Assembly (NCBI GenBank): GCA_950097015.1
Contig: CATNEN010000002.1
Span: 4,650,001-4,714,000 of the forward strand
Length of the DNA: 64,000 bases
DNA from: Macrostomum hystrix
Taxonomy: Eukaryota; Animalia; Platyhelminthes
Direction of reading: 5' to 3'
A program made the translations under genes and the position numbers. Positions 26,101 to 47,323 of the stretch are shown in pieces. Positions within the stretch are counted from its first letter, which is position 1, and each line of letters begins with the position of its first letter. A model generated the notes under the pieces. It saw nothing but the letters and a program-made list of their open reading frames with translations, had not been told where the DNA came from and searched no databases.

Positions 26101-29100
26101 TCGACGACACGCGCGGAGCCGGCGGAAGAGGAAGCTCAGTCTCGACAGCTTCTATGCTGCTTTCGCCAACAACATCGATGGCATCGTCTGTCCCTGCAGC
26201 AGCTTCAAGCTCTGGCAAAGGCGAGGAGAGCCTGTTCGCCAGGCACTCGCGCACCAACAGTGTGCGCTCGCGCAGACCACCTAGCATTGCTGGGCCAATG
26301 CAGCAGCAGCAGTACCAGCACATGCTCATGGTGCAGCAGCAGAGCCACCTACTGCTGCCACCGACTGGCTACGGACAGCCGCCGGTCTGTCAGCAGTTCA
26401 GCGGCGCTGGATTGGACAGACGTCGCGCCACGAGCATGCGCGATCATCAGGGCAGGCAGCACCGAGCTGCGTCCAACAGTTGCTATGGCAACTGGTGACT
26501 CTTAAGAAAAAATATTTTCGTAGAAAACTTTTCTGAAAAGACTACGAAGACGAAAATTATATGTAAATAAACATTTGCAGACCTGATTATTTGGTTTAAA
26601 AGAATAGCTAGCAACTAGCAAGGTTTCAGCTATTTTATTGTGAAAAACTTGTCTGCTCTACAATTCTAAACCCGATGTATTTCATAACCGCTACAACAAA
26701 TATATTTGTAAAAATCTAATTAACTGGACAAAGAAGTTCATTGCCTCCATAACAAACACGCGCTTGTTGATTTAAAAAAAGTAAATTTAAGTTAACAGAG
26801 TTTTAGCTGCCAAGCCAACTTCATCCCGCTGTACAATTGTTAACTACACGCATTAGAACATTAGAACAATGGTTGATTTCTAATTGCTAACTGAGACACC
26901 TGAGAATATTGAGAATGAGTCAATAATGCTAGCAAGCGAAACATGCCTAGCTAGAGAACAAAATTAATCGCCCCGAATTCAACTTCCTTTATGGATAATC
27001 TCAATTGCAAATCTCACGTGCTAGACATTTTTCTCTGTGACAGACGAACAGACAGGAAGTGGCTATGTCTAATAGTGCAATCACGTGCAGTTTCCAATAA
27101 AAAGTACGGCTTAATCGCACTAGAAGTGTCATTTACAAGTCTATGCTTTAATTTACATTCGATATGTAATAGTCCTATATTATTTTTTTGCGTTATAACT
27201 TGTAGTAGTTCAATGTTATTTCTTGCGCTATAACTTGATTCTCCTGCGATATATATATATTATATAGGTTTATATTATAAATATTTTTTATATTCCAGTA
27301 AAATGCGATAGTAAAACAAATTTTACTAATACTATATAAGTGAGGAGCTTTACTGTTCATAATACAACCCGCCAGTGAGCCAAGAAGGCAACAACTGAGT
27401 TACATCTTTGAATAATCGAGCTTATTGTGTTATTTACTAAGGAGATACATTTGAGTGTGGTGATAAGACGAGGATTGAGGCTGTGACCCTCTGATCCTGG
27501 AGAAACGCCCAGTTGAGACTGGAGAATAAGGAGACCTAGTGCCTTAGAGGGATAAACCGCTCGTGCCAGTGCAGAAGCGCTACCTAGGAGAAGCTCACAA
27601 CGTAAGAGTTGTGAAGTTAAAACGGCCCTTTTCAGGGCCACCGAGTTAAAGATGTACGGAGAGTGCGAATAGTAGAGAAAGAGATAAAAGAGCGGAAGAG
27701 GCCGAAAGATACGCTACCAAGAGAGAGAAAAGTAGAGTCATAAGCCCTGTTACAGATAAACAGCAGCTAATAGTGTTTCTTATGTTTGCTGTCAAATTAT
27801 TTATTGAACTATTGAGTGAGTTAATTTAGTGAGTTACACTAAATTATCTAGAACTGCTAGGAGCTGTTTTAAAGCAACAATTTATGGCAAGCAAATAGAA
27901 GGCCGTAATGATTCCACTTTAGCCTACTAGCTGAGGTAGAGAACACTCAAACCAGCGGAGCCTCACAATGAAGAGGCATGCATTTAGCAGTGAAGTGCCA
28001 TGCAGCGAGGCCCAATGCAAACCAGGCCCTCAAAACCATGGCGAAAGAGAAATCGGTTTTTTTTCTCTTTTCAACAGGCGATGCGGTAAGTATTGAATTT
28101 CTTGGAAAGAGCAAGCATTGTAGTCACGATAGAAAGTACTTTAATAAGGCATGCTAGAATCAGTTACATTAGAATTCTAAATCAATAGAATAATCGTTAC
28201 ACAAAATGCCGCAGAATAAAGTACTCACCTTTGGAATGAATGAGTCGCAAGCGCGACACTTTGACTTGCCGCTCTTGGCATACTCGACCTTGAAATCCTT
28301 CAGGTTCACCATCGGCTCGTCTTCGGCTTCCCCGTCGGCGCCATCAGTGCCACCCGAAGTGCCAGCCCCGCCGCCTAGATAGGTAAAATTAGGTTGGAAG
28401 TTTTATTGAAGGGGTCGACTAGCTCAAGGCGCCGCCTAGACTGCAAATTTTAGGCGACAAATTCTTGTCTTAAATCGTGCTTAATCGATCTATCCTGCTT
28501 GTTTTTTACGCGTTTTATGTCTTCTAAATATATTTTTTACTGTCTCTTCTGTCACCTGTTTCATTTCTCTTCTGTCCTATCTCACTTCTATCGTATATTT
28601 CCTATCCCATCACTTACAATGTCTAATCTCTTTCCATTATCTCTCTAAAAAATGTCTGATTTATCCATCGTTGCATAATGTTTTCGAGTTTATAGTGACT
28701 AAGTTAGACAGAATTTTTCGTGTTTCTCTATTGTCCAATCTGGACACTCATGGCCATCTATTGAATTTATTTTATCTGCGATGAATAAAAAAATTTGCAC
28801 ACCCCCAAGTTAAGAATGATGCGTATATCCAATAATCGTGTTTGAAACACACTACTAATTTTGTGGCATTAAGTAGAAATATGAACAAATGAATGTTATA
28901 ATTTAGCAAATCTAAAAAATAGCAAAAAGCAAAGTAGTTCAAAAGGTCACCAATACGGGGACTTACCGATTTTCTCTCTAACCTTTTGCTGATCGTCCCA
29001 GCGAAGGGAATCGAAGTGGCCAATCTCTGTCACATCCTTTGGCCGCTGACGCTTGAAGAAGCAGGCAAAGTGGAACCAGTTCGGCACTTTGCCATCAAAG

Positions 29101-29448
29101 TGCGGCGACTAGACAATGGAAAATTTCAGAATAAGAGACATCGGTAAGCTGTCAGCAAACTTACATTCATCAAACGCCTAGGGAGAGATGAGTCACGGGA
29201 GAGATAGGACAGGTGAGAGATGAGACAAGGGAGAGATAACACAGAGGAGAGATGAGACTTAGGGGCAGAGCAGAAGTTGAAAAAGGTCTGGAGTTTAGCA
29301 AGCAAAATCTCTCCCATCCCTAACCTATAAATCTCACCTGAATCATAACAGCCAGTCGCAGCGAGTCCTTAGCAATGGTCATTTTGCAGCCTTTGCAGCT
29401 GGCACGATTGCTTTTAGCATATTCACAGATATATGAATGGTCAGACAT
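14160..29448 (-). CDS. PARP1: Poly(ADP-ribose) polymerase 1; 11 exons (29338-29448, 28967-29108, 28229-28374, 22774-22913, 21705-21788, 20233-20344, 18487-18818, 17533-17978, 16634-17217, 14826-15335, 14160-14573), ~1006 aa
   Basis: ZnF1 ([13 protein letters not shown]...WFHFACF), ZnF2 ([13 protein letters not shown]...WHHVDC), Zn3/PADR1 (CTECK...[11 protein letters not shown]), BRCT, WGR (FRAWGRIG), regulatory domain and the catalytic H-Y-E triad ([23 protein letters not shown]). All junctions are GT-AG and phase-compatible. Confidence 0.97.
15457..16580 (+). mobile_element. SINE family A copy whose central segment is expanded into a 27-bp tandem array
   Basis: Head GTGAGTTCGAATCGC...CAAGAAAGACA before the array and SINE body ...CCAGCATTAGCTGGGGTAATTGAGGGTGGGTGTGGCGTCCCC after it. 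Confidence 0.8.
15535..16500. repeat. 27-bp minisatellite (GGATTACACCCAGCTGTTAAATGGGAGCC type), about 35 units
   Basis: Exact tandem periodicity (DYTQLLNGS in the spurious ORF). Confidence 0.97.
17250..17535. repeat. 22-bp minisatellite built from the PARP1 5' splice site
   Basis: Minus-strand unit CTGGCTGGGTGAGTGTCTCAGG; the real donor G|GTGAGT at 17533/17532 is the first unit. Confidence 0.9.
18020..18430. repeat. 28-29-bp minisatellite (GTCAGATTGGGGATCTCTGAAGATTCCGGT) in a PARP1 intron
   Basis: Tandem units visible. Confidence 0.92.
18902..19394. mobile_element. MITE family M1 copy 2 (deletion near the left end)
   Basis: Right end GGCTTGGTAGTCCTACTG followed by TTAA; internal AAATATTAGGCGCAGCTCAACCACAGGACACC shared with the other copies. 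Confidence 0.78.
20540..21100. repeat. ~36-37-bp minisatellite (ATCAATCAGCTTATCTCCTAAATCCCATCTACCAATC) in a PARP1 intron
   Basis: Tandem units visible. Confidence 0.93.
21888..22741. repeat. 41-bp minisatellite (GAGCATCAGGGACAGTGCTCACTGTCACACTGAACTGAATT), about 21 units, with an internal palindrome
   Basis: Head-to-tail units with no spacers; most units contain GACAGTG-CT-CACTGTC. Confidence 0.96.
25683..26498 (+). CDS. Intronless Ser/Gly/Gln-rich, probably disordered protein (271 aa), nested antisense in the long PARP1 intron (22914-28228)
   Basis: 816-bp ATG-to-stop ORF with GC-rich coding-like composition in AT-richer surroundings; motifs [18 protein letters not shown]. Confidence 0.65.
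   Translation: MLRSDYKYSREPSTESGAAKGNGIGDIGRQGICGNLLTAPGGHSDPVENSSGDSGGGSSKRSGSMKHWSPFAALGKRARDGLRRCNTVRVGLGGTSAGSMASTSSTTVDINLGNRRNAMPNIFLGQPSSGVRRLFAIYGIDDTRGAGGRGSSVSTASMLLSPTTSMASSVPAAASSSGKGEESLFARHSRTNSVRSRRPPSIAGPMQQQQYQHMLMVQQQSHLLLPPTGYGQPPVCQQFSGAGLDRRRATSMRDHQGRQHRAASNSCYGNW
27619..27644 (+). promoter_or_regulatory. Canonical replication-dependent histone mRNA 3' stem-loop with no recognisable histone CDS upstream
   Basis: AAAAC-GGCCCT-TTTC-AGGGCC-ACC: 6-bp stem, TTTC loop and canonical-type flanks, followed by purine-rich AAAGAT and GAAAGAGA. Confidence 0.7.
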
Positions 29449-32429
29449 GCTGGCTCACTGAAAAATGATTAGATTACAACTTTGCAATTCTCTAGTAGGC
29501 ATAGGATCCTGGTTAACTTAAAGTATTGCATAAATTTAAATGACTGCTTTTTGGAGTAAAAAAGACCACTTATATGTGACTAATGAGGATAAAAAGATTG
29601 GCCAATGGTCTAAAATTGTACAGCTAGGTTTGACTAGGATATACATAAGAAGAAAAAATGACAGGCTAAGCAAATTTCTTATATGCCCTCGTTTTGTTAA
29701 GTTTTAGACAAAAAGCATTCTTCAATCTAATTAAATCTTCTTTTAAACAGCTACTTTCTTAAAAAATACAAAACAAAGTTTTCAATCTAAAATATATTAA
29801 TTCTTTAATCTAGGACTTTGAATATATGAGTATACTCATTTTAAGATTAAACTAGCACACTAAGCCCCCATTGAGGGGCACTACTGTTCAGACAAAAAAT
29901 CTCAGAAGGACAAAACACACCTAAAAGTAAACAAACAAACAAAAAAATTATGTCAGTATTAATTTCTATGATTGCGAATATATGTAATTTTGATTCAATG
30001 AGAATTTGAGTTCTCAATAAATACAAAAATGCTCAGTCTGAGCTCAAATACATTCTGAGACAACCAGTGTGAACACCAAGAGCACCATTGTGGCAGAATT
30101 ACAAAAGTAATGTACATTTGATACTACTCAACTTAATGCTACTAAGGTACATCATGTAAATACTATCCCCTCAGCAGCAGAGAACATATGTCCCACCAAA
30201 CAGCAGAGAACGATTGTCCTCTCAGCAGCAGAGAACCAATGTCCCCCAGCAGCAGAGAACCAATGTCCCTTAGCATTAGAGAACTAATGTCCCCTCAGCA
30301 ACAAATGACCACTTTACCACAAACAGCAGAACTAATGTCCCCTCAGTAGCAAATAACCAATGTCCCCCAAAATTTGATATCATGATAGACATCAGATTGA
30401 GTGAGATAATAGCTAGGTGTAAAATGAAATGATTTTACCTTTTATTACATTTTAGGCAGGCTTAGGAATAAAGTATAGGCCTAGAGAAAGTCATTTAAAT
30501 TGATAAAAAGTTTAGTGGAATATAATAGCCATAATATTAAATCTTTAAAATCTGAAATTATCCCTTTAGGCTTTTTCATTATTTTATCAATGTATTCTTT
30601 ATTCTTTAACTCTGATCAGACAATATGAACTTCTTACTAAACCCTCCAAGTGATGGTGAATAAGTGAATATGATCAATTATCAATAGCTAGGCTTTTCTA
30701 AGCTTAAGTTGAGGCACAGAAACAAATATAGCCTAGATAGCCGATAGGCATTGTTATGCCTATTGTAAGGGCCAATAAATTTTATAGAGTAGGCCTAGTC
30801 TTATGCTATGATAGACTCAAATAAACAATTTTGTGTGTGTTGATTTGTCTAAAGACACAACTAATATATGAGTGTTAAAGAGTGTTACTTATATTAACAC
30901 AACTACTCTATATCTTTTCAAGCTTCTGGAAACTTAAGACTTCTGTGCCAGAACACAACAAGTTAGCAAATGCTAGGTCTCTGTATTAATAAGCTTAACC
31001 TACTAAATCTAGGCCTACTAAGCTTAGGCTGTGCTACAGTAGGCCTACATATAACATATATAGGACAGGGCCTATGAAATATATAAGCCTGCGAAGCCTA
31101 AAAAGCATAGGCCTAGCCGGTACTTTTACTAGGGGTGAAATCTCATCAACCGAACAAGAAAATGTCATTTTCAAACATTCCATGTTTGATAACAAAAAAA
31201 CTAAACAAGATAAGAAAATCTAATTTACCGGTACTTGTTAAAAACAGTTTTATCTTTCAAATGAAAGTCTACTCATCTAAATCGGTTAACTACAAAAAAA
31301 GTTGTGTCTATTTTTGTTTCAATTCCGAACAATGAATTTCCCATTTCATCAAACCGAACGATGTTTCTGATGTTCGGTTTTTTTTGCCCAAAAAATTGAC
31401 TTCTGCTCAATAAAAAGCTATAACAAAACAGTGTAAAAGAAAGAAAAAATCATGCTGCATCGATTTAAGTAAAGTTCAATAGTCCGATTTGATAAGAAGA
31501 GGGTTATTTTTTACATCGAAGTATGTACCCCCAACCCGAGTCAAATAGTGCAATTTTCATTCCATCTTGAGTTTTCCTGCTTCAGGCACACTAAACAGCG
31601 AAACAAACAGCGAAAAAGTCATGTGCTGTCTTTGCTCATGAGTTTCCTATGGTTCGCGGAGTTTATAGTCTTTTGCAACGAAGCCTTTAGTGACAAACTC
31701 ACCCTCATTTCATAATTTTAGGCCTGGCAGTACTTGCGATATCTCAGACTTAAAGTCGCTGCAGCTTTATTATGCAAACACAGATGCTTGGTAAAACTTT
31801 AAAATAAATGAAAACCGTGCAGAACTTCAAGTTAAAATCGGTTTCTCCAAGTTTAAAAGTGTTTACGCTGACTAATGAGAATTAATGTAACTCACTTACA
31901 CAAAAAATGTCCATTTTTTCGAAATCTTTCATACTTTTTTCTGAGCGTGTTTTTCTACTGCCAGACTACTAGTCCTACTGGCAGTAGTCTGTTGCGGACA
32001 TTTTAAAAGCTAAAGCAAATGATCCCAACTCTTAGGAAAAAAGATTGAAGGTCCAATAGAGGCTAGGCCTACACAACTGGGACTCCTTGGCAGACAGGGC
32101 AGAGAAGGAGACAAAGGCGGGAGAGAGCCGAACAGACCATTGTGTGATCTCCATGGCAACCGAGTTGCACATATGACAATTGTTGGCTACGATGAATGAC
32201 GGGGCGAGGCCTAGCCAAAGGTATGAAGAAGCAATCTGGACTGGAAGCCGACCCCAAAACCCTGACTCGACTTGTTGGAGGCCACTTAAATTTGCCCATC
32301 AACACACAGCAGATAGGCAAAGTAGCATTAGGCCTATAGGCCTAGCACATAAAGAAAGGTCATAAATAAGAGCAAGTACTTGGGGGCCTAATTTCAAGGC
32401 TGAAAATTTACTCTGTAACTTGATCTTTA

Positions 32430-33011: not shown

Positions 33012-33260
33012 CAAAATGCTCGAAGACCAAAACCCCTGAACCGGGGTTCAATTTTGGGGTCATTCCATTACCACTCAGCCAGAGGCTAGGCCAGAGATTT
33101 TAGGCTTACTTTGAAGGGTTGGAATTATTGCATAATACGAGTACAAAGCACATTTTAGAAAAAAAAAACAGTAAACAGCCAATTATCGCAGTTTATTTTC
33201 TTTGCTGAGAGCTGCGAATGCAAATGGAATCCCAATCACACGAAAGGACAAAACTAAAAG

Positions 33261-35198
33261 ATGGCTAAAATACTACGAGTAAAAGAGAGCCAGAAAGAAG
33301 AGGGCGGGAGTGAGGAAGCTGAAGAGCAGAAAGAAGATGGTTGGAGTGAGGAAGCTGAGAAGCAGAAAGAAGAGGGCGGGAGTGAGGAAGCTGAAGAGCA
33401 GAAAGAAGATGGTTGGAGTGAGGAAGCTGAGAAGCAGAAAGAAGAGGGCGGGAGTGAGGAAGCTGAAGAGCAGAAAGAAGAGGGCCAGAGTGAGGAAGCT
33501 GAGAAGCAGAAAGAAGAGGGCCAGAGTGTGGAAGCTGAAGAGCAGAAAGAAGAGGGCGGGAGTGTGGAAGCTGAAGAGCAGAAAGAAGAGGGCCAGAGTG
33601 AGGAAGCTGAGAAGCAGAAAGAAGAGGGCGGGAGTGAGGAAGCTGAAGAGCAGAAAGAAGATGGTTGGAGTGAGGAAGCTGAGAAGCAGAAAGAAGAGGG
33701 CGGGAGTGAGGAAGCTGAGAGCCAGAAAGAAGATGGCGGGAGTGAGGAAGCTGAGAAGCAGAAAGAAGAGGGCGGGAGTGAGGAAGCTGAAGAGCAGAAA
33801 GAAGATGGTTGGAGTGAGGAAGCTGAGAAGCAGAAAGAAGAGGGCGGGAGTGAGGAAGCTGAAGAGCAGAAAGAAGATGGCGGGAGTGAGGAAGCTGAGA
33901 AGCAGAAAGAAGAGGGCGGGAGTGAGGAAGCTGAAGAGCAGAAAGAAGAGGGCCAGAGTGAGGAAGCTGAAGAGCAGAAAGAAGATGGCGGGAGTGAGGA
34001 AGCTGAAGAGCAGAAAGAAGAGGGCCAGAGTGAGGAAGCTGAGAAGCAGAAAGAAGAGGGCCAGAGTGAGGAAGCTGAAGAGCAGAAAAAAGAGGGCGGG
34101 AGTGAGGAAGCTGAAGAGCAGAAAGAAGAGGGCGGGAGTGAGGAAGCTGAAGATCAGAAAAAAGAGGGCGGGAGTGACGAAGCTGAAGAGCAGAAAGAAG
34201 AGGGCCAGAGTGAGGAAGCTGAGAAGCAGAAAGAAGAGGGCGGGAGTGAGGAAGCTGAGAAGCAGAAAGAAGAGGGCGGGAGTGAGGAAGCTGAAGAGCA
34301 GAAAAAAGAGGGCGGGAGTGAGGAAGCTGAAGAGCAGAAAGAAGAGGGCGGGAGTGAGGAAGCTGAAGAGCAGAAAGAAGAGGGCCAGAGTGAGGAAGCT
34401 GAGAAGCAGAAAGAAGAGGGCGGGAGTGAGGAAGCTGAGAGCCAGAAAGAAGATGGCGGGAGTGAGGAAGCTGAGAAGCAGAAAGAAGAGGGCGGGAGTG
34501 AGGAAGCTGAAGAGCAGAAAGAAGATGGCGGGAGTGAGGAAGCTGAGAAGCAGAAAGAAGAGGGCGGGAGTGAGGAAGCTGAGAGCCAGAAAGAAGATGG
34601 CGGGAGTGAGGAAGCTGAGAAGCAGAAAGAAGAGGGCGGGAGTGAGGAAGCTGAAGAGCAGAAAGAAGATGGTTGGAGTGAGGAAGCTGAGAAGCAGAAA
34701 GAAGAGGGCGGGAGTGAGGAAGCTGAAGAGCAGAAAGAAGAGGGCGGGAGTGAGGAAGCTGAAGAGCAGAAAGAAGAGGGCGGGAGTGAGGAAGCTGAAG
34801 AGCAGAAAGAAGAGGGCGGGAGTGAGGAAGCTGAAGAGCAGAAAGAAGAGGGCGGGAGTGAGGAAGCTGAAGAGCAGAAAGAAGAGGGCGGGAGTGAGGA
34901 AGCTGAAGAGCAGAAAGAAGAGGGCGGGAGTGAGGAAGCTGAAGAGCAGAAAGAAGAGGGCGGGAGTGAGGGTGCAGGGTGGCAACCACAGCGACGATTT
35001 TTGTCTTTTATGTTGAAGGTGGAAGCTAGGCCTTTTGACATTGATAGCTTCCAGAAAAAAAACTCAATTCCTTCTCGTGGTGACTCGGAAGCAAGGACTC
35101 ATTTGTCTTCTGCTAATAATTTGGTATTTGGTGCTGCATTTTATATCATTGATATGTTTGATTTGATTCCATTGACATTCAGAAATATAGGGGCCTAA
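33261..35198 (+). CDS. Possible Glu-rich repeat protein (645 aa) made of 12-aa SEEAEEQKEEGG units; may only be a stop-free minisatellite
   Basis: ATG in AAAGATGG context, unique 11-aa N-terminus, ~46 repeats, unique ~75-aa C-terminus. No homology evidence. Confidence 0.35.
   Translation: MAKILRVKESQKEEGGSEEAEEQKEDGWSEEAEKQKEEGGSEEAEEQKEDGWSEEAEKQKEEGGSEEAEEQKEEGQSEEAEKQKEEGQSVEAEEQKEEGGSVEAEEQKEEGQSEEAEKQKEEGGSEEAEEQKEDGWSEEAEKQKEEGGSEEAESQKEDGGSEEAEKQKEEGGSEEAEEQKEDGWSEEAEKQKEEGGSEEAEEQKEDGGSEEAEKQKEEGGSEEAEEQKEEGQSEEAEEQKEDGGSEEAEEQKEEGQSEEAEKQKEEGQSEEAEEQKKEGGSEEAEEQKEEGGSEEAEDQKKEGGSDEAEEQKEEGQSEEAEKQKEEGGSEEAEKQKEEGGSEEAEEQKKEGGSEEAEEQKEEGGSEEAEEQKEEGQSEEAEKQKEEGGSEEAESQKEDGGSEEAEKQKEEGGSEEAEEQKEDGGSEEAEKQKEEGGSEEAESQKEDGGSEEAEKQKEEGGSEEAEEQKEDGWSEEAEKQKEEGGSEEAEEQKEEGGSEEAEEQKEEGGSEEAEEQKEEGGSEEAEEQKEEGGSEEAEEQKEEGGSEEAEEQKEEGGSEEAEEQKEEGGSEGAGWQPQRRFLSFMLKVEARPFDIDSFQKKNSIPSRGDSEARTHLSSANNLVFGAAFYIIDMFDLIPLTFRNIGA
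33290..34970. repeat. 36-bp minisatellite (GAGTGAGGAAGCTGAAGAGCAGAAAGAAGAGGGCGG), about 46 units
   Basis: Exact 36-bp periodicity with a few recurrent variant units. Confidence 0.97.
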
Positions 35199-35965
35199 GC
35201 CTGTTGCCTGCAGTGTGTGTTGATTTGCTTTCAAATTTAATCAATTTGTATTGAGTCTGCTTCCTTTCTTGGTTTGTTCGTCAGGGGTTTTTGTTAACCG
35301 AGAAGGAGGCCCTTCCCTGCCGCAGCAGCAAGCAAACCTTGTTGTATTTATCAAGAAGGTAAATTTTATTGTAATCAATATTTTCTGCCTTGACAAAAAA
35401 TACTAATCGTTTAAATATGAGCGTAGATTCTTTCTAGCAGATTCTTGTTTATGTATTATTTCTTGATTTAATTTTAAGTTGCTTGCCGCTGAAAACCAAG
35501 TTAAAGCCACTAAGTAAAACACAATTATATACACATGAAAGAGTTCATAAGCAATTTTTTTGTTTTTTTTAGATTTTTTGTTTTTGATGTGCGCTTATGT
35601 AATATAAAGGTGCAGATAATAGCAAGGCAATGTTTGACAAGCAGGCAGACAAAACGATTGTCGATACGAGTGCAGCAATGAGCATTTGTTAAGCAATTTG
35701 TGAATAAGGAGGATGATGCAAGCATATTTAAATATAAGAAAAGTAAAATAAAATGAGCATTTCGCATTGAGCAGCACAAATGACTATGTAGCCTAATGCG
35801 GCAGTTTTATTTATAAGATTAGAAACCGTAAGCTTGAGAGTGTGATATTTTAGATTAAAATATAGTAATGTTCAAATAGATACAATTAAATAGCGTATCT
35901 ATATGAGATGGCTTAAAAAGAATGATTTCCTCATGCTGCTCAGTGCCTAATGCGGCTGCGGGCAT

Positions 35966-38900
35966 TCATGAGTTCATCTCGAGCCCAGATGAACCCACGA
36001 TTCCGACTGTCATGCCTTTTGCAAACTGGGGATTCGGCAACACAGCGACTTCACTCACCAGTGCAGGGAACTCATCGCTCTGGTCCGGGAAGACGAACGG
36101 CTTCTGTCCTCCGGCCATCCAGCTCGAGATTGACTGGGTGCAAGCAGAGACGATGACTTGTTTGTCACCCAGGAGATGAATAACTCGACTCGGGTAATGC
36201 TGCCAGGAGTCCACACGTCCTCTGCACGTTGTCCGCACGGCGGCCAGCACCCAGCAGTTGAGGCTCAGTTCCGGTAGAGGCAGCGGCAATAGCGGCATGT
36301 AATGCACCTCCGGGATGTGCGCCAGCTTGATCGGCTGAACACCTTGCATGCACCCATCCGGCAGGACCTCGGTTGGACAAGTGCTTTCAGGCTGGTAGAT
36401 GTGAATCGGCCTGCTAAGAAAATATGCTAATGCAACGATAATTGGGTGATCGGCATATGTGCTGGGAAGCCTCATTTCTGTAAAGTAAGTTTCAAGCGGC
36501 TTATCGAGAAAATTAACGATACTCTCACCATTGGATGCGAGTACTAGGCCATGCTTCTCCAAGTAGTCGCAGGTGTCCAGCCGAAGCTGGACTGCATCAG
36601 CTTCAGTGCCCTCAGACCGCAGAATCTGCTGAATTGAGTCAAAAAAGCAATTGCCGGATGAATCAGCCTTATCAATTGAGCAATTCAGTGACTTCGCCTT
36701 CGCATCAAGCATGCGAAGTGCATCGTCGATACTGAGCGCGGCTGGGGTAGAAGCGGCTGCAGGCTGCTGCTCTGAGGCACTCGCGACTCGCATGGGCACT
36801 CGCCGTGGAACCGGAATCGGCTTCCTCTTTTGCAGCCGAGCAGCTTGCCGGGCACTCTTCAAGTTTAGGGCAGCTTGACGCTTCTGCGCTCTGGCTCTGA
36901 AAAAGGCTAGAATGGAGCGGCTTGTCAAGTTAGGATGTGGTATGTCCTGGTAGACGGATGTTTTCCTTCTTTTAGTAGGAATTGCAGGAGCCTGGCCATG
37001 CCGCTTCGTTGGAAACGCGATTTCCTGAGCAGTTGCCTTGCCAGCCGCTGACACGGATGACACCGGGCAGAATGCACCTGCTGGAAAACAGGAAATGATT
37101 CAATATATTTCATTGCGAAATGGCCAACAAGGCATTCAAAATTTAATGAATAGATTCTTTCGTCTTTATTTGACTTAGGTTAGTGCATTAAGCCGTAAGC
37201 AAAAAGGCTCATAAACCCCAAGAGTCATAAGCCCCAAGGCTCATAAACCCCAAGGCTCAATTAGACCAAATTGCTGAAAAATCCCGATAAATCAATAGAA
37301 TCAACTGACAGAGTTCATTTGATCGGTGAATGCACTTCACAACTTGAGAGTGAGTCAAAGGAGTAAATAAATAAAATATATCATAATTTTATAATTTCTT
37401 ACCTGGCTGCTCCTCGTCACTTGATGCCGCATTGACCGCCGGAATTGTTTCCTGTTCTTCATCCGCTGGCATTGGACTGCTCTCAACCAGGTTGCTGCAA
37501 CTGTCTGAGCTCTGCGGGTCAGAGGAGGGGTCGCCTTCAGAGCTGACGTGCTCGTCATTAGGCTGCTCGCAGCAGAAATTGCCAGTCAGTCGGAACAGCA
37601 GCTGCTGCAGTGTGCGATCTGCATCAGTCTGAGCCGGCTCGGTCTGCAGCCGTTCAAGGTAAGCAGCCCCCAGAACGTCCTCGAAGCAGCGCTCAACAGA
37701 GCCGGCGACCGTCTGGCACTTTCTTGAAATCTTGGAAATTTTCGCTTCTGGCTGGCTAGATTGGCTCCCGCCGATGCTGCAGGCAACGTCCTGGATCACG
37801 GGTGCAGGTGGAGGGTCCTGGCGCTTGCAGAGCTTGTCGTAGGCCAGAGCATCCGGATTCCGCGGATAGATGCCGCTCTTCCTGAAGCCAGCGCTGATGT
37901 TCTTAGGAGTCGCCCGCTCCATCAGGACCTCCCGCAGCATGCTGACGAAGCTCAATCTGCTGATCATGCTGCCAAATGCCACTTTCCGAGACCGGTCCGC
38001 CAGAAGCTCTCGCCAGCCAGCTTTCACCGAACGAAAGACGGCAAGATCAAGCGGCTGAAGGACATGCGTGGCATTCGGAACGAGGCCGTAGAGCACGACC
38101 TTCTGTTGCCGCAGGTAGTCAAGAACCTCTAGGGAGAATCTAGAGTCATGCAGATCTGTGAAAAGGACAACTGGGCGACGGGTATTGTGTTGTTCCAAGA
38201 ATGGAACAAATGTTTCCTTTGCGAAAGCCTCAAATGCATTGGCTGTCATCCAACCATTGGGTGAAAATGCATAGTGGTAATCACTTGGATAGGCACCCAT
38301 TTGCTGTTGCTTTTTTCCTGGAAACAGAAAGCGTGGCGGTAAAATTGCACCAGCGCATTGCACGGTAATTAAAACGGTCGTGTGCTTGCGATCACTGCCG
38401 TGAACCTTCTGCACAACATTCACCATGCCCTTCTCAGCTAAAACTGAGTGGGATTTCATTGCCTGTGGCACTGAAATTTCGTCGCAGTTGAACATGCGGG
38501 CCGGGTCCTGCAGAGCTCCATCGAGAAGGCTGTCGCTCTCGAAGTCCGATAGCTCTGTGAACCAGTTGCGGATCCGCCCTTCGGTGACAAGCGTCCGGGC
38601 TGGATTGACAGCCTGGGGTGTCCGGCGAGAAATGTCCGGGTGCCGCTCCAGGAAGCGATTTATCCAGCCATCGGACAAACCAGACTGCTTGAGCTAAGAG
38701 AAAATAAGATTAATGCAGCGAAAAGTTATTTAAAAGTTGAAATGCACAAGATTTAATTCTCAGGGATGGAGAGATGAAGGGATGGAGAGATGAAGGGATG
38801 GAGAGATGAAGGGATGGAGAGATGAAGGGATGGAGAGATGAAGGGATGGAGAGATGAAGGGATGGATATATGAAAAGATGAGGAAATTTCTTATGCTCAT

Positions 38901-39915
38901 CCTTAGGCCTATTTGTTTATAGGGGATATCTCAAAAGTCTGTCTACAAAACTTATTAACATTTTCATCATAATACGATCTCATACTATAATGATGGCCCT
39001 CTGATTATATTTCGGTGGGACTGCCATGCACCATACTGGGGCACCGTGAAAGCGGAACAGTGTGAAGGTTTCCAGGGCGCTGTCTCTAGGGCGAAGCCAG
39101 ATGTAAGTGAAATATAAATATATATAAATATAAAAAATATTTATATAAAAAATATAAATATAAATATTGGGGAAGAAGAGAAACAAGCAACGAAGGAAAA
39201 AGCGGGTGAAGAGAACCTGGAGGGGAAGGGGATGAAGAGAACCTGGAGGGGAAGCGGTGAAGAGAACCTAGAGGGGAAGGGGATGAAGAGAACCTGGAGG
39301 GGAAGCGGTGAAGAGAACCTGGAGGGGAAGGGGATGAAGAGAACCTGGAGGGGAAGCGGTGAAGGGAACCTGGAGGAGAAGCGGTGAAGAGAACCTGGAG
39401 GGGAAGCGGTGAAGTGAACCTGGAGGGGAAGCGGTGAAGAGAACCTGGAGGGGAAGGGGATGAAGACGCTTCTTTTCCGGAACAAAAAATGAAGATGTGG
39501 GTCCTAAACGCATTCGATAGAAATTTGAACATTTTTGGCCTGTTCCCTATACCTTGGTTGCAGGTAGCAGGCCGCTGCGGTCCTCGCTCGCTTCGCTGAG
39601 CTTCACGACTGCTTGGGTCGCCTGTTGCTGCAGCTGCTTCCGAGTGATAGGAATTTGCTGCCGGGCAGCTTGCTTTATTGACTCGCTGAGCAGCTGCTCT
39701 TCAGCTTGGGTGAAGTACCGCTTGCATGTGTTCTTATTGCGCGGCCTCTGCCCATTCAGTACCTTGCGGACTCTGTCATAAAGTGTAGTGGTGGGTACAG
39801 AATATTGATTAGCAGCATCTCGATAATTTATTGATTTCCCACTTCGGATTTGTGCTATTGATGTGGAGTGTGCTGCGGGAATCGAGTGGGAATGTGAGCC
39901 AGCAGAATTTTTCAA
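35966..39915 (-). CDS. Pogo/CENP-B-family DDE transposase (HTH_psq + CENP-B HTH + DDE_1, DD35D) spliced in frame to an OTU-like cysteine protease and a Tudor-like C-terminus; exons 39553-~39900 (5' end unresolved), 37403-38693, 35966-37077
   Basis: AANQYSVPTTTLYDRV (psq); SDGWINRFLERHP (CENP-B HTH); FNCDE, LFTDLH and QPLD with 35 residues between the 2nd and 3rd Asp. Donor CCAG|GTAAGA (37403) and acceptor TTTTCCAGCAG|GT (37077) are in phase. OTU motifs SGNCFFDSI, YADHPIIVALA, EVHYMPL. Confidence 0.8.
38762..38880. repeat. 16-bp minisatellite (GGGATGGAGAGATGAA) in the transposase intron
   Basis: About 7 tandem units. Confidence 0.92.
39205..39465. repeat. 25-bp minisatellite (GAAGAGAACCTGGAGGGGAAGCGGT) in the transposase intron
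   Basis: About 10 tandem units. Confidence 0.92.
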
Positions 39916-40199
39916 TTTTTTTAGTATCTAATAATCGCGACCCACATAGCAGCTGGCCACAAACAAGATCATTAATCTTAGGGCCGGGTTTGGGGCGGCG
40001 GTGAATTAAGTAGCCGTCGAATCCCTTTTCCCTGGATCTGTCTAGACCCCTGTAGGAATGACTGATCGCGGCCATAACTTTTATTGTATGAGTAGTTTAG
40101 GTCATAATTCCCCTCCAAACCGCGATCAGATATCGGGAATCACTCGGGCGTTATGAGTGATCATTAATTCTTCATGTCCCCACTTCTTTACAGTATTCG

Positions 40200-40660
40200 A
40201 GCCTAGCTCGACTTTATGACCTTCCTCCTTTTAGATACATGTAAATGTCACTGTAGGCAGGTCGGCGCCTGCGCTTCCCATTGTCCCGGCGGAGTAACAA
40301 CCATTGGCCGACTGCCGACGGCTGTTCGCGCAGAACATCTGTCGTTTCCCGCCGTCGGTTCATTGGGTAATCGGGGCGGCCCATCGCCGCTCGATTCCCC
40401 GTTGACAGGCTGGCGCGAATGCGGGCTGCTTTGATGGATGTCGGGGTTGGCGTGCTGCAAGACTATTTAAGCAAGCGCTCCGCGCTGCTCCCTCTAGGAC
40501 CCCTCTTCCTTCGGGAAACTCACCTTCATCTCCCCCGCCGGATTCACCTTTGCCGGGCCGGACTCCCACCGGACCCAGGACTTATACTCCGGACCCAATT
40601 CTCCACATAGGGCTTAGACCCTAGAGCTATAAGCTCAGATCAGCGCTCACAGGCCCATTG
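40200..40660 (+). pseudogene. Probable degenerate tyrosine-recombinase fragment (DIRS/Ngaro/Crypton type)
   Basis: One frame reads VGVLQDYLSKRSALLPLGPLFL ... LILRTQFST*GLDPRAISS, resembling the CPVxxLxxYLxxR...PLF and L...GxDP motifs of YR elements. Contains stops. Confidence 0.4.
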
Positions 40661-41931
40661 CCTGTTTCCCTCCCCCTCGTAGCGACAGCCACCTCTTTAG
40701 GTGAGCCTTCTAATTGAGCCTTTGAGCTCCTGGTGCGTTGGCCCCTGCCAGCATCGCAATAAGCTTATCCCTTCTCTGCCTTGCTATCTTTGCCCTACCT
40801 CTCCCCGAGAACTACGGGATTGCAGCACGCGGCCGATCGACATCCGGATAAGTAACCCGCGCAGCGGTCTTTAATTGCTAATCCTAAGGGACCCTTTATT
40901 AAGCTAGGCGGCACTTTAGTGGGCAAGGGGGTAGGACTCTTGGCTTAATAAACATTACAATTCTAGCCACTAATTACTTTAGGCCAATTTAAAAACAATC
41001 TAAATCCTCTCATCCTGCGTCCGCCTCTGTTTTATTTATCTGTTAGACAGCCCTCAGAGATGAGTGGCTAATCTCCTAGGGGGTGGGCTCTGGTGATGCC
41101 GAGCCGAAGGCTGTGGCAGGAAGACAACTGTACGCGCGCATAAGAGTAATAAGGAGCTAGGGATTCGCGAGTAAAATGCGGAACGTAGCGTGTGCATTGC
41201 TGCCTAGTGGCGGGGGATTCCTTGGCCGGCTTTCCTCGCTCACTGGCGGATTCCAGTGTACGCGTCAAATTCCTTTGCCAATTGAGTTCTCCTACTATTC
41301 CCCGCCTCTCGTAACCGCGGCCATGGGAGCGAGAGGTGTGACCTAATAATCATCGCTTGCGTAATCACTTAGCCAGTGTTCTGCTTAATCTCTCCAGCCT
41401 CTGATTTCCTCATCTCACACAGATTCGGATTTGTTAGTTACTTAATGTGTAGGCTGCAGTCTAATGTAAAGAATGTGTTTGATGTTTCATGAGTAGGATT
41501 CCGGCTATGGATTTTCATTCGAGTTCTGAGTACCACCTTTCTAGACCCCTGTAGCGCGAATTCAGGAATCCCCTTTTGAGGCGTGTCTCGATCCATTCTG
41601 GGGCTCTCACCCCAGTCTAAAACGGAAGTTGCAGAATGCCCTATTTTCCGGCTTGTCTAGATCTGCGTGATAAACTAGGAGCTGTGTACTCCGGGGACCC
41701 AAGTTCCCAAATGCCTGCGGTGGCAACGTAGGCGCATTGGGTGGTGGCGCTACCCGAGATCATCTATCCGCTTTGCCGATAGCCTTTCCGCAGTTCTGTG
41801 ACAAGAGCCTAGGCCGATTCGACCACCGCTACCAAGGTTAGGAGTCAGTTGCGCACGTACTACTGACGACAGTAGGCTGTCTAGCCCTGTCCTGTCCGAT
41901 TCCGGATAGTCCGAAGCCTCTCTCTCTAGAC

Positions 41932-42893
41932 CAGGGGTACGCAAACTCCGGCCCGCGGGCCAGATGCGGCCCTCGAAGCTTCCAAATCCGGCCCGTTGCA
42001 CCTTCTGACATCTACAGTGTCCTGTTTCATCTCACTCGTGTCTAATCTCTCCCGTGTCTAATCTCTCCCGTGTCTCATCTCTCCCGTGTCTCATCTCTCC
42101 CGTGTCTCATCTCTCCCGTGTCTCATCTCTCCCGTGTCTCATCTCTCCCGTGTCTCATCTCTCCCGTGTCTCATCTCTCCCGTGTCTCATCTCTCCCGTG
42201 TCTCATCTCTCCCGTGTCTCATCTCTCCCGTGTCTCATCTCTCCCGTGTCTCATCTCTCCCGTGTCTCATCTCTCCCGTGTCTCATCTCTCCCGTGTCTC
42301 ATCTCTCCCGTGTCTCATCTCTCCCGTGTCTCATCTCTCCCGTGTCTCATCTCTCCCGTGTCTCATCTCTCCCGTGTCTCATCTCTCCCGTGTCTCATCT
42401 CTCCCGTGTCTCATCTCTCCCGTGTCTCATCTCTCCCGTGTCTCATCTCTCCCGTGTCTCATCTCTCCCGTGTCTAATCTCTCCTGTTTCTCATCTCTCC
42501 CGTGTCTAATATCTCCTGTTTCTCATCTCTCCCGTGTCTAATATCTCCTGTTTCTCATCTCTCCCGGGTCTAATCTCTCCCCTGTCTTATCTCTCCCGTG
42601 TCTCATCTCTCTCGTGTATCATCTTTCTGTGTCTCATCTCTCCCGTGTCTCATCTCTCCCGTGTCTCATCTCTCCCGTGTCTCATCTCTCCCGTGTCTCA
42701 TCTCCCCAGTGTCTCATCTCTCCCGTGTCTCATCTCTCCCGTGTCTAATATCTCCTGTTTCTCATCTCTCCCGTGTCTCATCTCTCCCGTGTCTCATCTC
42801 TCCTCTATCTCATATTTATACAGTCAATGCGGCCCGCTGTCGTCTTTTAGGTTCTCTCTTTGGCCCGCCAGTAAATAAGTTTGCCTACCCCTG
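41932..42893. mobile_element. hAT (Charlie-like) MITE carrying an internal 16-bp tandem array
   Basis: TIRs CAGGGGTACGCAAACT / AGTTTGCCTACCCCTG; perfect 8-bp TSD CTCTAGAC at 41924-41931 and 42894-42901; subterminal GGCCCG motifs. Confidence 0.92.
42035..42810. repeat. 16-bp minisatellite (TCTCATCTCTCCCGTG)
   Basis: Exact tandem units; related units at 43410-43465 and, inverted, at ~29185-29265. Confidence 0.97.
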
Positions 42894-44415
42894 CTCTAGA
42901 CTTTTAGCCGGTTTCGAGCATTGCTTGGGGTAGGCACGGCAGTCATGCCTGTGGCCTATGGGACGAGTGGGACTGGCCAGCCTGAGGCCGATAGGACCAC
43001 TCCCTGCATCTACTGAACCTCCTCATCTCTCCCTTCATCTCCTCTCTCTCTCCGCGACATCTCGCGAGTTGCTAGGCGGATATTTAATCGACTATGTCGC
43101 CCGCCTCTAGCAATCATCTCTCATGAGGGCAGGTCAGCGGTTGCAAAACACCCAAACCATGTCAGGATGATCTTCTCCATGACTAACCATTTCAATTCAT
43201 GTAAACCCTTAACAGAAATGATAATTAAAACGTTTCATTTGATGGCCATCATATGAAAGAACATTAAAAGCCATTGGACCCGTAAGTACGAGTAACATTT
43301 TGATAGAAAAGCGCAAACTATAAATAATTGTAAAGTCTGACATTACAGCTTCGTGAAAATTAATCAGCCAATTAGTCAACATGGTATTTATACTGTCAAT
43401 GCGGCCCGCTGTCGTCTCATCTCTCCCGTGTCTCATCTCTCCCGTGTCTCATCTCTCCCGTGTCTCGTCTCATGAACTTACTGAGTACGTCAACTTCGAG
43501 AAAAGCGTACTTCATATAGTTTCCAATGCTGCACCGAAAATAGCCTTTATTGTTACCGTTGCAGCTTCTCACAGTAAGCACAGAGCCGTTTGCGTTGTCC
43601 TCAATCATAACATCGCTCTGCGTGGTCAGGTTGATGTAACTTTCAGGTGATGTCGTGTTGCTGGCGCGGAAATGCCACTGTACGCTGTCAGTGTTACTGC
43701 GCTTACTGCACCTGAGCTCAACTCTGCTCAGCTTTGAAACCCAGATCGGAACAGCTGCGACATCCACTGGCGGGGACCTCATTTCAACTAAATAGAAAAA
43801 CTGTACGTGTTTGTAGTACTATATAGAGTTTACTCAAACGGAAAAAAAATTACATAATAAAATACTCACGGGAGTAGAGTTTAGTCATTCGGCCCTCTAT
43901 TAGTAGCTTAGTGGGGCCTTTCAAGACGCCAAAAGCTTCGTATGAGATCAAATTATTCTCTTTGTCGGCGCACTTATAGTACGTGTAGCCGCCATCGTGG
44001 TCCTTGCTTAGCTGAGTAGTTGACAACATTAACTGCCTGCTCCTCTGCCCTTCAATCTCCTCAAACCTGATCGATGCCTCCCTGTACTTATACCACCGAA
44101 GAGACTCCACCGTCAACGTCAGCGTGCAGGTCAGAGAGATATCGTCTTTGGGAGCAACAAAAATCTTCATTGAACTGTTCTCAGGCGGCACTGGTTGGGA
44201 AAAATTATCACCAGCTTTAAAAAAGTTATCATGGACTCGTGGACTGAACATACTTATCGTGAAAATTGTACTTTTTGTTTTTTTTCTGTACTGTTGCTCC
44301 TGTTTATTGCCAGTTGCAATTCATTATAGATTTTCCGACCCTGTTCGCGCTATCCTCCTACAGTCAGGCCCTAAGTTCTTGATTCTTTTCATTATTGATC
44401 TATCGATATTATCGA

Positions 44416-44705
44416 TTAACAACAACAACAACAACAACAACAAAATACGCAAGCCCAAACGTCAGGGGGGCGGCGTCAAATGATGCGCCGCAGAGCCAGC
44501 GCGCGAACATGGTCCGCGCCGGAGGCAGTGTCGGGCGCCCTGGCGTCGCTCAGCAGGCAGTCGACGGGTCCGAGCCTGGCCGCGCCTGAACGGGCCCTGC
44601 AGGGTGAGCAGAAGGACGTCCTGGGCGGGCTGGCGGCAGTAGCTTTCGGCCCGAATGACGTGGCCCGCTAGTCGAAGTCGTCGCTGGCGCAGGCGCTGGC
44701 GCTAA
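44416..44705 (-). mobile_element. 5'-truncated RTE-clade non-LTR retrotransposon (3' end) with a (TTG)n tail
   Basis: Minus strand translates RQRRLRLAGHVIRAESYCRQPAQDVLLLTLQGPFRRGQARTR, the typical RTE C-terminal RRLRxxGHV...G.R.RG motif, ending in TTG repeats. Confidence 0.8.
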
Positions 44706-44709
44706 TAAC

Positions 44710-45050
44710 AGAGAAATTATCGATTATTAGAGCGTTTGCCTCTCTCACCAAAGTCCCTGAACTCGATTCTGCAGATTATGAGAGGCCATATTGATTTGGG
44801 GCGCAGCAGTGAAAAAGGTATTGGTGACTGGTCTTGTAATTTACGGCCTTAAGGGGCCAACCTTCAAGGGCACAGTGAAATTTACACTGCCTGACGATGA
44901 GAAAGTCAGAGCAGGTGTATGCACCTGTGTGAGCGCGTGCCTGCGCTCAATCTGTGTGCGAGTGAGCTCAGGAGTCGGCGAAATGGACAGAATTGCCTCC
45001 TCGCTGGCAGTGGAATTAGAGTCACCAAATGATGTGCCGACCATTACCGG
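44710..45050 (+). mobile_element. SINE family B copy
   Basis: GCGTTTGCCTCTCACC head; ACACTGCCTGACGATGAGAAAGTCAG and AGAATTGCCTCCTCGCTGGC core. Confidence 0.8.
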
Positions 45051-47323
45051 CATAAGTATTTTTGTTCAGTCAACTCCTCGGTCTTGAAATTAGTTAAGTA
45101 CAAAACTACGAGTAATATGCAAGTATTTTAGAGCACTCCAGCTGTACTCACATTCGGTAAAAACGAACTGATGTACTCTATACTTATTATTAGTCAATGG
45201 AGGCTCCATCACACAGTAGAATGAGCCAAATCTTTTATCATCAGTGCTGATAGTCAGGGTTGCCTCAGTGCCAATCACGCTGCCATTCTTCAATCAGAAT
45301 TTGAACCGGCTCGGTGGAGACACTACACAGAGCGGCTGACTCCCACCCGTTACTGCCGTGTAGCGCCTCACGGACAGCACGTCCAGCTCCGCAGAGAATC
45401 GCTGGCCTACCGTCAAAGCTTGCGCGGCTGAATCAAAGGGCGCATAGCTAATCCGCAAGAAGAGCAGGTAGGCAACAGACATTGTTGGTTGAAACATGCT
45501 TTCTGTCCTGATATGCTGGTGAAGAAAGCCAGAACATTGTGTAAGAAGAAGGCACAGCTTTTTTGTAGAATGAAAAACTTCATTTTGTTTAAGTAAGACC
45601 GGAAAATGCGCCCTAGCTGTTAGTCCCAATTGACCCTAAATTGTTTATAAAAAAATCTACCCCTACTGAATAGGTAACTGATAAAGAATCTGATTTTCAA
45701 AATAAACGTTAATGGCAAGGTTGATGAACACTCATATAGCTCATTAATACCCAGCTTAATTGATCCGGTTGACCAGAAAGACGTGGCGATCTGTCACCGA
45801 GAATTGAATGCTTTTAGTCAAGATTTTCGAGACAGTTGAATTCCCGCTGCTATTAAACATACCAGCCTCGACTGGCCAGCCTCGAGTGCCACGACATACA
45901 GAGGCTGCGGGTGACCAGGTATGCTACTGCTATGGATTACTTAAGCATATACTAGCCTCCACTGCAGCAACTCATTCCAGAAAGCCTCCCCGAGTTTGAT
46001 GCATGACTGAAAGCAGTGTACGATATTAACGGCAATAAGACCAGGCTGTTTTATCCGGAGAACTTTATCGGAAAGTTTTATACTACGGAGCATTTCAAAT
46101 ACCCACTGCCTATAGTTCCCAAACCGAATGACAGATTATCGTGAAAGTCCACCACATGGATACAAAATTTCCTTCAGATTTGAGAGCCCAGCTGAGGCCA
46201 GCCTGGCTCAGATCTCTCAAAACGCCCACCCACCCCCGCTTCCCATTGTTCTGGTTCACTCAAGCGTGACGGGAGCTTAAGCTTTAAATTTCCTTTACAT
46301 TTGCGCAAACCCTTAGTAATTTTCCCCAACGCATTGTGAATTTATTGATCTCCCCAATGTAATCTTTAAGACAAGTATTTTCATAAGTTGTTTAGATAAT
46401 TATCAAGTAAATTCATAATTAATGCGCTGTTGCGAATGAATATGAACATCAGCCGCCCCATATCCCCCAAGCTTACTGTACAACGTCGGGCCAATCAAAG
46501 CGCGTGGCAGGGCTCGGTTGTAAGTTAATGTATAAATGTATAAATAATACACGTGGTGAGTGGTGAATAGGAATATTCGTGCAATCAAAGTTTTGGAATA
46601 AGTGTTTAAATTGTTGAATTGGGCAAATTCAGATCCATTTGGAAGCCTGAGTAGACTGGAAACCTCAGATCAGTGCGTATATAAATGGGAAAAAACAGTG
46701 GATTTACATGTGTTATAACTAGAGTGTCTTGCCCCTCGGACACTAGCTTGCTACCAATGAGACAATAAATGTGATATAAAATCTGAAGGGATAGAAGTAT
46801 AGAGCACATAAGTGACTCATGTATTCGTTTCGAACTAATTGTTTAGAATTGTTATAATAACCAGAAAGTTTGAATTCTAAGGAAACTGGAGCTCTTAGTG
46901 GAATTCAGAGAAAGCACTTCGATTGAAATTGAGATTGTGCATGAACGCCTGTCCACGCTGTTTCGTGCGATTCTGAAAATTAAAGAACGAGCCGTCTTGG
47001 TCAACTGAGGTTGAGCAAGACGCGCTGTTGTGCTATTGTAAGAATTGGTATGCGACACTTTTACTGGCAGCCGGAACTTCTCATTAATCTATTAATAGAC
47101 TTCTCATGCTGCTGTTTGTGACAGCTGCGCTTTGATGTCCACGGCGAAGCATCTGATCGGACTACTTAACTGTAAACAGTAAAAGTCTAGGAAAATGAAC
47201 AACTGCGTAGTCCATTTCGAGAATTTCGAATCCGAGTCCAGGGGTATGTGACCTATCAGCAATACGATTACGAGGGTACTTATTGCCTCAGCTAAGCAGC
47301 TGAGAAATAAAGGTAACTATTAA

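Follow-up and report, generated by a model that had tools for sequence, protein, structure and literature searches.

Gene structure and surroundings

Within the window, by which we mean the whole 64,000-nucleotide stretch of Macrostomum hystrix DNA analysed here, the region 35966-39915 contains three minus-strand open frames that consensus GT-AG sites join in frame, and these encode a single spliced protein in which a pogo transposase is followed by an OTU domain (Table 1). Splicing is seen in contig 12 of sequencing run X5 (2,328 nt), which covers 39858-39553, 38693-37403 and 37080-36958 with 12 differences in 1,720 letters, and omits 38694-39552 and 37081-37402 exactly, at CT..AC on the plus strand. 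The type label of this run, 'DNA?', is a guess, and its organism label differs from that of run X1. We infer that X5 is cDNA, because its depth is zero in whole 200-base bins within both introns and also zero on a high-copy repeat where X1 depth exceeds 20,000. The original prediction had placed one consensus phase-1 intron at 37078-37402. Its GT-AG borders, phase and frame hold, but the skip length of 322 in X5 shows splicing to the proximal AG within a NAGNAG acceptor, 3 nt from the predicted site and with the frame unchanged, and the other intron, likewise skipped in X5, had been overlooked. It had also been considered that transcripts might end at the unspliced stop, with the OTU domain belonging to a separate gene; instead, the X5 contig crosses the junction in spliced form. 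Contig 12 extends 123 nt into exon C and contig 10, at the same depth, covers the remainder, with no single X5 contig spanning the DDE core through to the OTU active site. Similarity searches were run with single exons or parts, and the joined model was used solely for motif positions and substitution classes.

Table 1. Features of the pogo-OTU gene and its 5' border, in window coordinates.
Feature	Position	Strand	Remarks
Probable 3' UTR	35581..35939	-	ends at A-rich tract; X5 contig 10 extends to 35581; AATAAA near 35811
C-terminal tail, beta-rich	35940..36271	-	window stop 35966; alternative frame stop 35940
Exon C, coding part	35966..37080	-	basic region, OTU domain, tail
OTU cysteine-protease domain	36281..36730	-	Cys codon 36649-36647, His codon 36304-36302
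Basic region, probably helical	36791..37036	-	KRRK and conserved SVYQ..NLTSRS block
Intron 2	37081..37402	-	322 nt, GT-AG, phase 1, proximal AG of NAGNAG acceptor; skipped in X5
Exon B	37403..38693	-	second half of Tc5 HTH, DDE_1 core, acidic linker
Intron 1	38694..39552	-	859 nt, GT-AG, phase 0; contains two short tandem arrays; skipped in X5
Exon A, surviving part	39553..39858	-	psq HTH, then first half of CENP-B-type (Tc5) HTH; lacks its start codon
High-copy repeat, unrelated	39859..41000	.	adjoins and replaces gene 5' end; drop in copy number after ~40610

Several other features lie in the surrounding DNA. A complete non-autonomous hAT-type element at 41932-42893 has 15-bp terminal inverted repeats (TIRs; CAGGGGTA.GCAAAC) matching at 14 of 15 positions, a perfect 8-bp duplication, CTCTAGAC, on either side, and an interior formed by a 16-bp tandem array. 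A 36-bp tandem array occupies 33261-35198 and is open over long frames in either direction (645 aa, Glu-rich on the plus strand); just upstream of it, at ~33200-33250, LLRAANANGIPITRK is similar to the eye to the Tc5 HTH in exon A, a likeness for which tblastn gave no support. A PARP gene on the minus strand, with WGR, regulatory and catalytic domains, and exons from an immunoglobulin-domain gene are the neighbours at 14163-29450 and 43420-45300, and no tie between them and the pogo-OTU element was seen.

Domains of the encoded protein

The psq HTH, CENP-B HTH and DDE_1 domains of the original prediction are recovered by Pfam as HTH_psq in exon A (E 9e-5, above the cut-off), HTH_Tnp_Tc5, which intron 1 divides between exon A (E 0.006) and exon B (E 0.01), both halves being below the cut-off, and DDE_1 in exon B (E 1.5e-10). 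There is no Pfam match to a Ginger1-type core (H2C2 finger, rve, GPY/F), only to DDE_1 and the pogo HTHs. The DDE_1 triad consists of three Asp codons at 38483, 38156 and 38048, and 35 residues separate the last two (DD35D), as in every relative aligned. The claim of an intact D-D35-D thus stands as regards the three Asp residues and their spacing, but not as regards the second motif, which reads DLHDSR in the window and NLHDSR in the homologue L001, neither having the canonical DGHxSH context; all 15 of the other aligned relatives have DGHxS. The pairing of HTH_psq with HTH_Tnp_Tc5 for DNA binding, DDE_1 and DD35D are shared with the pogo Fot/Fot-like group (PMC7386202), which the window protein resembles in architecture; it departs from that group in its C-terminal OTU domain, in DLHDSR for DGHxSH, and in that no TIR or target-site duplication (TSD) was seen. 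Fot and Fot-like elements are recorded there from fungi, protists and algae, not from animals (PMC7386202), and the window core is 32-35% identical to unannotated and insect pogo-like transposases.

The OTU domain in exon C matches PF02338 (E 1.7e-9), and its predicted structure, with pLDDT mostly above 90, finds OTUD3, OTUD1 and OTUD5 as its best fold matches, OTUD3 foremost (E 9.7e-10; TM 0.83 by target), so that the OTU fold is common to the window protein and these deubiquitinases. In an alignment of 65 rows the catalytic Cys is invariant and the His nearly so, and both are kept in the window and in L001. Profile, alignment and model therefore agree with the proposed OTU fold carrying a catalytic Cys and His. 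The motifs given for it, SGNC and VHY, were right as to the Cys and the His, but only the window has the Ser of SGNC: FGNC stands in runs X1, X5 and X6, and YGNC in L001. None of these has the Asp of the DGNC loop (Cys-3), which is present in 46 of the 65 aligned domains, and the residue at His+2 in the window is non-polar. In OTU proteases it is mostly the backbone of the Cys-3 residue that contributes to the oxyanion hole. For this reason the loss of Asp is predicted to be a change that need not abolish activity.

In the 65-domain tree the OTU domains of the window and L001 form a clade (support 100/95) on a long branch, and the branching singles out no donor lineage. Across the whole domain, their identity to the nearest relatives does not exceed about 38%. 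These proteins (P0029-P0102) have OTU fused to Mab-21, NACHT-LRR, SEFIR, HEPN_DZIP3, COR-B with GT4-conflict, TPR or kinase domains and, judged by such partners, represent a shuffled module of invertebrate immune-type proteins. No transposase domain was found in any of the 18 long OTU relatives scanned, most of which have immune-type partners, and the named proteins among the long relatives are from molluscs.

These features bear on whether the element carries a working deubiquitinase. The domain could instead bind ubiquitin without cutting, act on another tag, or cut the transposase itself, as the replacement of the Cys-3 Asp by Phe, Tyr or Ser, the want of a polar residue at His+2 and the long branch might indicate. 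We regard this as unlikely: Cys and His are retained in both relatives under what appears to be purifying selection, His+2 varies among other relatives as well, and the predicted fold is confidently OTUD3-like. The favoured reading is a deubiquitinase tethered to the transposase.

The C-terminal tail is 46% identical to that of L001 and is a conserved coding segment. Its model consists of beta strands at a pLDDT of 47.5; a fold search with this low-confidence model gave a best Z of 3.3 and TM below 0.5, with Tudor absent from the list, and no Pfam or Atlas profile, Tudor included, matched the tail. The proposed Tudor-like tail was thus named by neither kind of search, and the implied parallel with OTUD4/ALG13 is unsupported. 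Some ordinary pogo transposases (P0011, P0026, L008) also end in a beta-rich segment whose position and motif spacing are similar by eye, although the similarity of the tail to this pogo domain is not significant. The basic region is colinear with the pogo basic helix, again without significance (E 0.17). In other pogo transposases a PHD finger follows the basic region (L007; P0009 by eye). The beta-rich ends and the PHD finger at the matching place suggest, as a lead only, that the OTU domain was inserted into a native pogo C-terminus. Given where the PHD finger lies, OTU also has the look of a chromatin or ubiquitin module that pogo transposases can exchange.

Conservation between relatives and decay of the window copy

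The best match in the exon B search was P0001, which bears both DDE_1 and OTU and is encoded on L001, a Logan contig of 3.2 kb (SRR30276804). Its order of psq-like start, Tc5, DDE_1, basic region, OTU and tail is that of the window. DDE and OTU lie within one 663-codon frame, with no intron at either of the window intron sites. Together with the exact skipping of both introns in X5, this fusion bears out the prediction of one spliced pogo-OTU protein. Identity between the two is 67% in the DDE core, 49% in the OTU domain and 45% in exon A (about 67% at the DNA level), and the basic region at 36791..37036 is 38% identical to P0001 over its range and 57% over its core. Rough estimates, with dS near saturation, gave dN 0.25 and dS 2.67 for DDE, 0.50 and 1.91 for OTU, and 0.38 and 1.16 for the tail. 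The most constrained part is the DDE core, and by these estimates every domain appears to be under purifying selection between the window and L001. Because dS is nearly saturated, the domains are constrained and the OTU domains are sisters, the comparison indicates that the fusion is old and has been maintained by selection.

The fusion is also rare. In a search with OTU and tail against 1.84 billion representatives, only P0001 fell below 1e-30, which goes against the common, catalogued family that the original prediction had named as its refutation. With P0001 as query, a word-limited search for full-length fused relatives returned P0001 itself only, a weak negative, and scans of metagenome and viral contigs yielded no transposase and one unrelated OTU protein. 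The latter (L009, 770-1807) comes from a metagenome contig of 2 kb; its frame of 346 codons contains no transposase, and its N-terminal part is OTU-like but divergent (SGNCFFES).

Neither relative is undamaged. In L001 the frame is broken by a premature stop and shifts ahead of the tail, and Asn replaces the second catalytic Asp. Immediately upstream of its start codon (2-134) lie about seven tandem 19-bp repeats, which could be putative subterminal transposase-binding repeats. The window copy lacks its 5' end and has no ATG. The stretch 39859-39915, which had been taken as part of the gene, is instead the end of the high-copy repeat, and the first 19 codons are repeat sequence. X1 depth is 21,000-51,000 over 39800-40599 versus ~165 on the gene (about 100-300x), and further copies of the repeat end at 39859 in X6 and X7. 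The high-copy part, 39859-40610, begins TGATGTGGAG and has a short inverted match, CTCCACAT, at 40601, with lower-copy sequence beyond; it could be an LTR or a MITE. Past 39858 the X5 contig, which extends for another 608 letters, diverges from the window and reads VRIQEATDYV in frame, opposite the first helix of the L001 N-terminal domain. A search of the window for the missing 5' end with the 30 unplaced X5 letters found nothing.

At the other end of the gene, in the pieces overlapping 35955-36068, the window exceeds each of the four runs by 4-5 letters, and translation in the alternative frame gives GFIWARDELMNARSRI, which agrees with how L001 ends; the window copy therefore has a private frameshift, a 5-nt insertion that shifts its last ~16 codons relative to all four runs. 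Among the coding differences listed between the window and the runs (40 of 296 rows), 16 are non-synonymous and 1 is synonymous, with P 0.056 under neutrality and 0.0025 at an omega of 0.5. This ratio among the listed differences fits neutral drift and not purifying selection. Divided by lineage, the listed changes are 7 non-synonymous to 0 synonymous for X1 and 9 to 1 for the window. The supposed integrity of the copy thus gives way to a 5' truncation, a frameshift and unconstrained listed changes and, since its start is missing, the window copy is probably non-functional.

Nature of the element and its relation to known transposons

On balance, we favour the view that the window holds a decaying copy of a pogo-superfamily cut-and-paste lineage, which would have captured its OTU domain long ago and kept it under selection. 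Selection between families combined with decay within copies is typical of transposons. Since this is the pattern found here, a transposon fits better than a domesticated gene. The original prediction had offered both a transposon lineage with its own protease and a domesticated, DNA-binding deubiquitinase; with both copies damaged and the recent changes apparently unselected, the former is the better fit. The protein is a pogo-type transposase that probably, though not provably, belongs to a mobile element. As had been noted from the sequence, no TIRs are apparent: a repeat search found neither TIR nor TSD around the gene, nor when its 3' flank was compared with the remaining window sequence, but only low-complexity matches, the material searched being a window without the gene's 5' end and, for L001, a 3.2-kb contig. 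The family looks low-copy in X1, because at a likeness of at least 85% most of exon C occurs there in a single version. Elsewhere, a pogo-like element without OTU fills contig L004 (2-4060) and has 26-bp perfect inverted ends starting with TA.

According to the main competing explanation of the gene's status, a single-copy host gene for a DNA-binding deubiquitinase arose from a pogo transposase, and what lies in the window is an allele or duplicate of it that has been broken. Pogo domestication is common (PMC7386202), and this explanation would accommodate the low copy number in X1, the want of a TIR, the change in the second catalytic motif, where L001 has Asn instead of Asp, and the fact that a run with another organism's label contains a version that is 99% alike, spliced and apparently expressed. 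Nevertheless, we hold it to be distinctly improbable, as both sequenced relatives are damaged, the listed changes in X1 and in the window are almost all non-synonymous, and the part most constrained between relatives is the DDE core. An intact frame under purifying selection among alleles, by which a domesticated gene would be recognised, was not found in the copies seen; other copies may differ. That a transposon remnant merely lies beside a separate OTU gene, the two being joined on paper or by read-through, agrees with the division of the X5 transcript over two contigs, but it is largely refuted and highly improbable given the exact in-frame splice in X5, the continuous frame of L001 and a five-domain order common to both at saturated synonymous divergence.

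If the gene belongs to a cut-and-paste element, as we favour, its parts may be assigned by comparison with other pogo elements: the HTH pair would bind the element ends, and the DDE core would excise and insert the element. The tethered OTU domain would then act in cis to strip off ubiquitin, or a tag resembling it. The likeliest substrates would be the transposase itself and proteins, such as those of chromatin and repair, located at the break and the element's ends, whereby the complex could be shielded from degradation or repair could be tuned. A bolder proposal, which we advance only tentatively and consider rather doubtful, is that of an undescribed, still-mobile pogo family that needs its own tethered deubiquitinase, drawn from the invertebrate immune OTU pool, in order to escape ubiquitin-based host restriction.

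Protease-bearing transposons are already known. The closest precedent, missing from those named in the original prediction, is Ginger1, whose transposases bear a C-terminal OTU or Ulp1 domain (Bao et al. 2010, PMC2836005). As in the window, a DDE transposase and a C-terminal OTU domain occur there in one spliced invertebrate protein; unlike the window protein with its pogo DDE_1 core, Ginger1 has a Gypsy-integrase-like core and CCGG/CCGT target duplications. The difference in cores therefore implies either independent capture or a swap between elements. Bao et al. proposed for the Ginger1 protease the same link to ubiquitin and repair as is proposed here, and why Ginger1, Helitron and Mutator elements acquired such proteases has been a guess since 2010 (PMC2836005). 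Helitrons carry OTU (PMC11417382) and Mutator elements Ulp1 (PMC2836005), so that in these, too, a ubiquitin- or SUMO-type cysteine protease has been captured repeatedly by DNA transposons; they differ from the window element in transposase chemistry or family, and the Helitron OTU sits upstream of RepHel. Gao et al. 2020, who surveyed pogo elements, do not use the word OTU (PMC7386202). Our literature search, which returned Ginger and Helitron papers and had Repbase and most subscription journals outside its range, gave no report of a pogo-OTU or DDE_1-OTU protein. The combination is thus apparently new, in that we found no report of it.

The value of the finding is comparative and experimental; no new chemistry is demonstrated, and the window copy is broken. 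The pogo case adds an apparently independent protease capture to those of Ginger1, Helitron and Mutator, and it does so in a group with cell-based transposition assays, described for Passer (PMC9976928). The role of the protease in transposition is consequently testable in the pogo group by a Cys-to-Ala change. If the proposal of a mobile family dependent on its own deubiquitinase were true, no earlier case of the kind would precede it in the IS630-Tc1-mariner group, and it would provide a compact system for asking why DNA transposons keep capturing ubiquitin/SUMO proteases.
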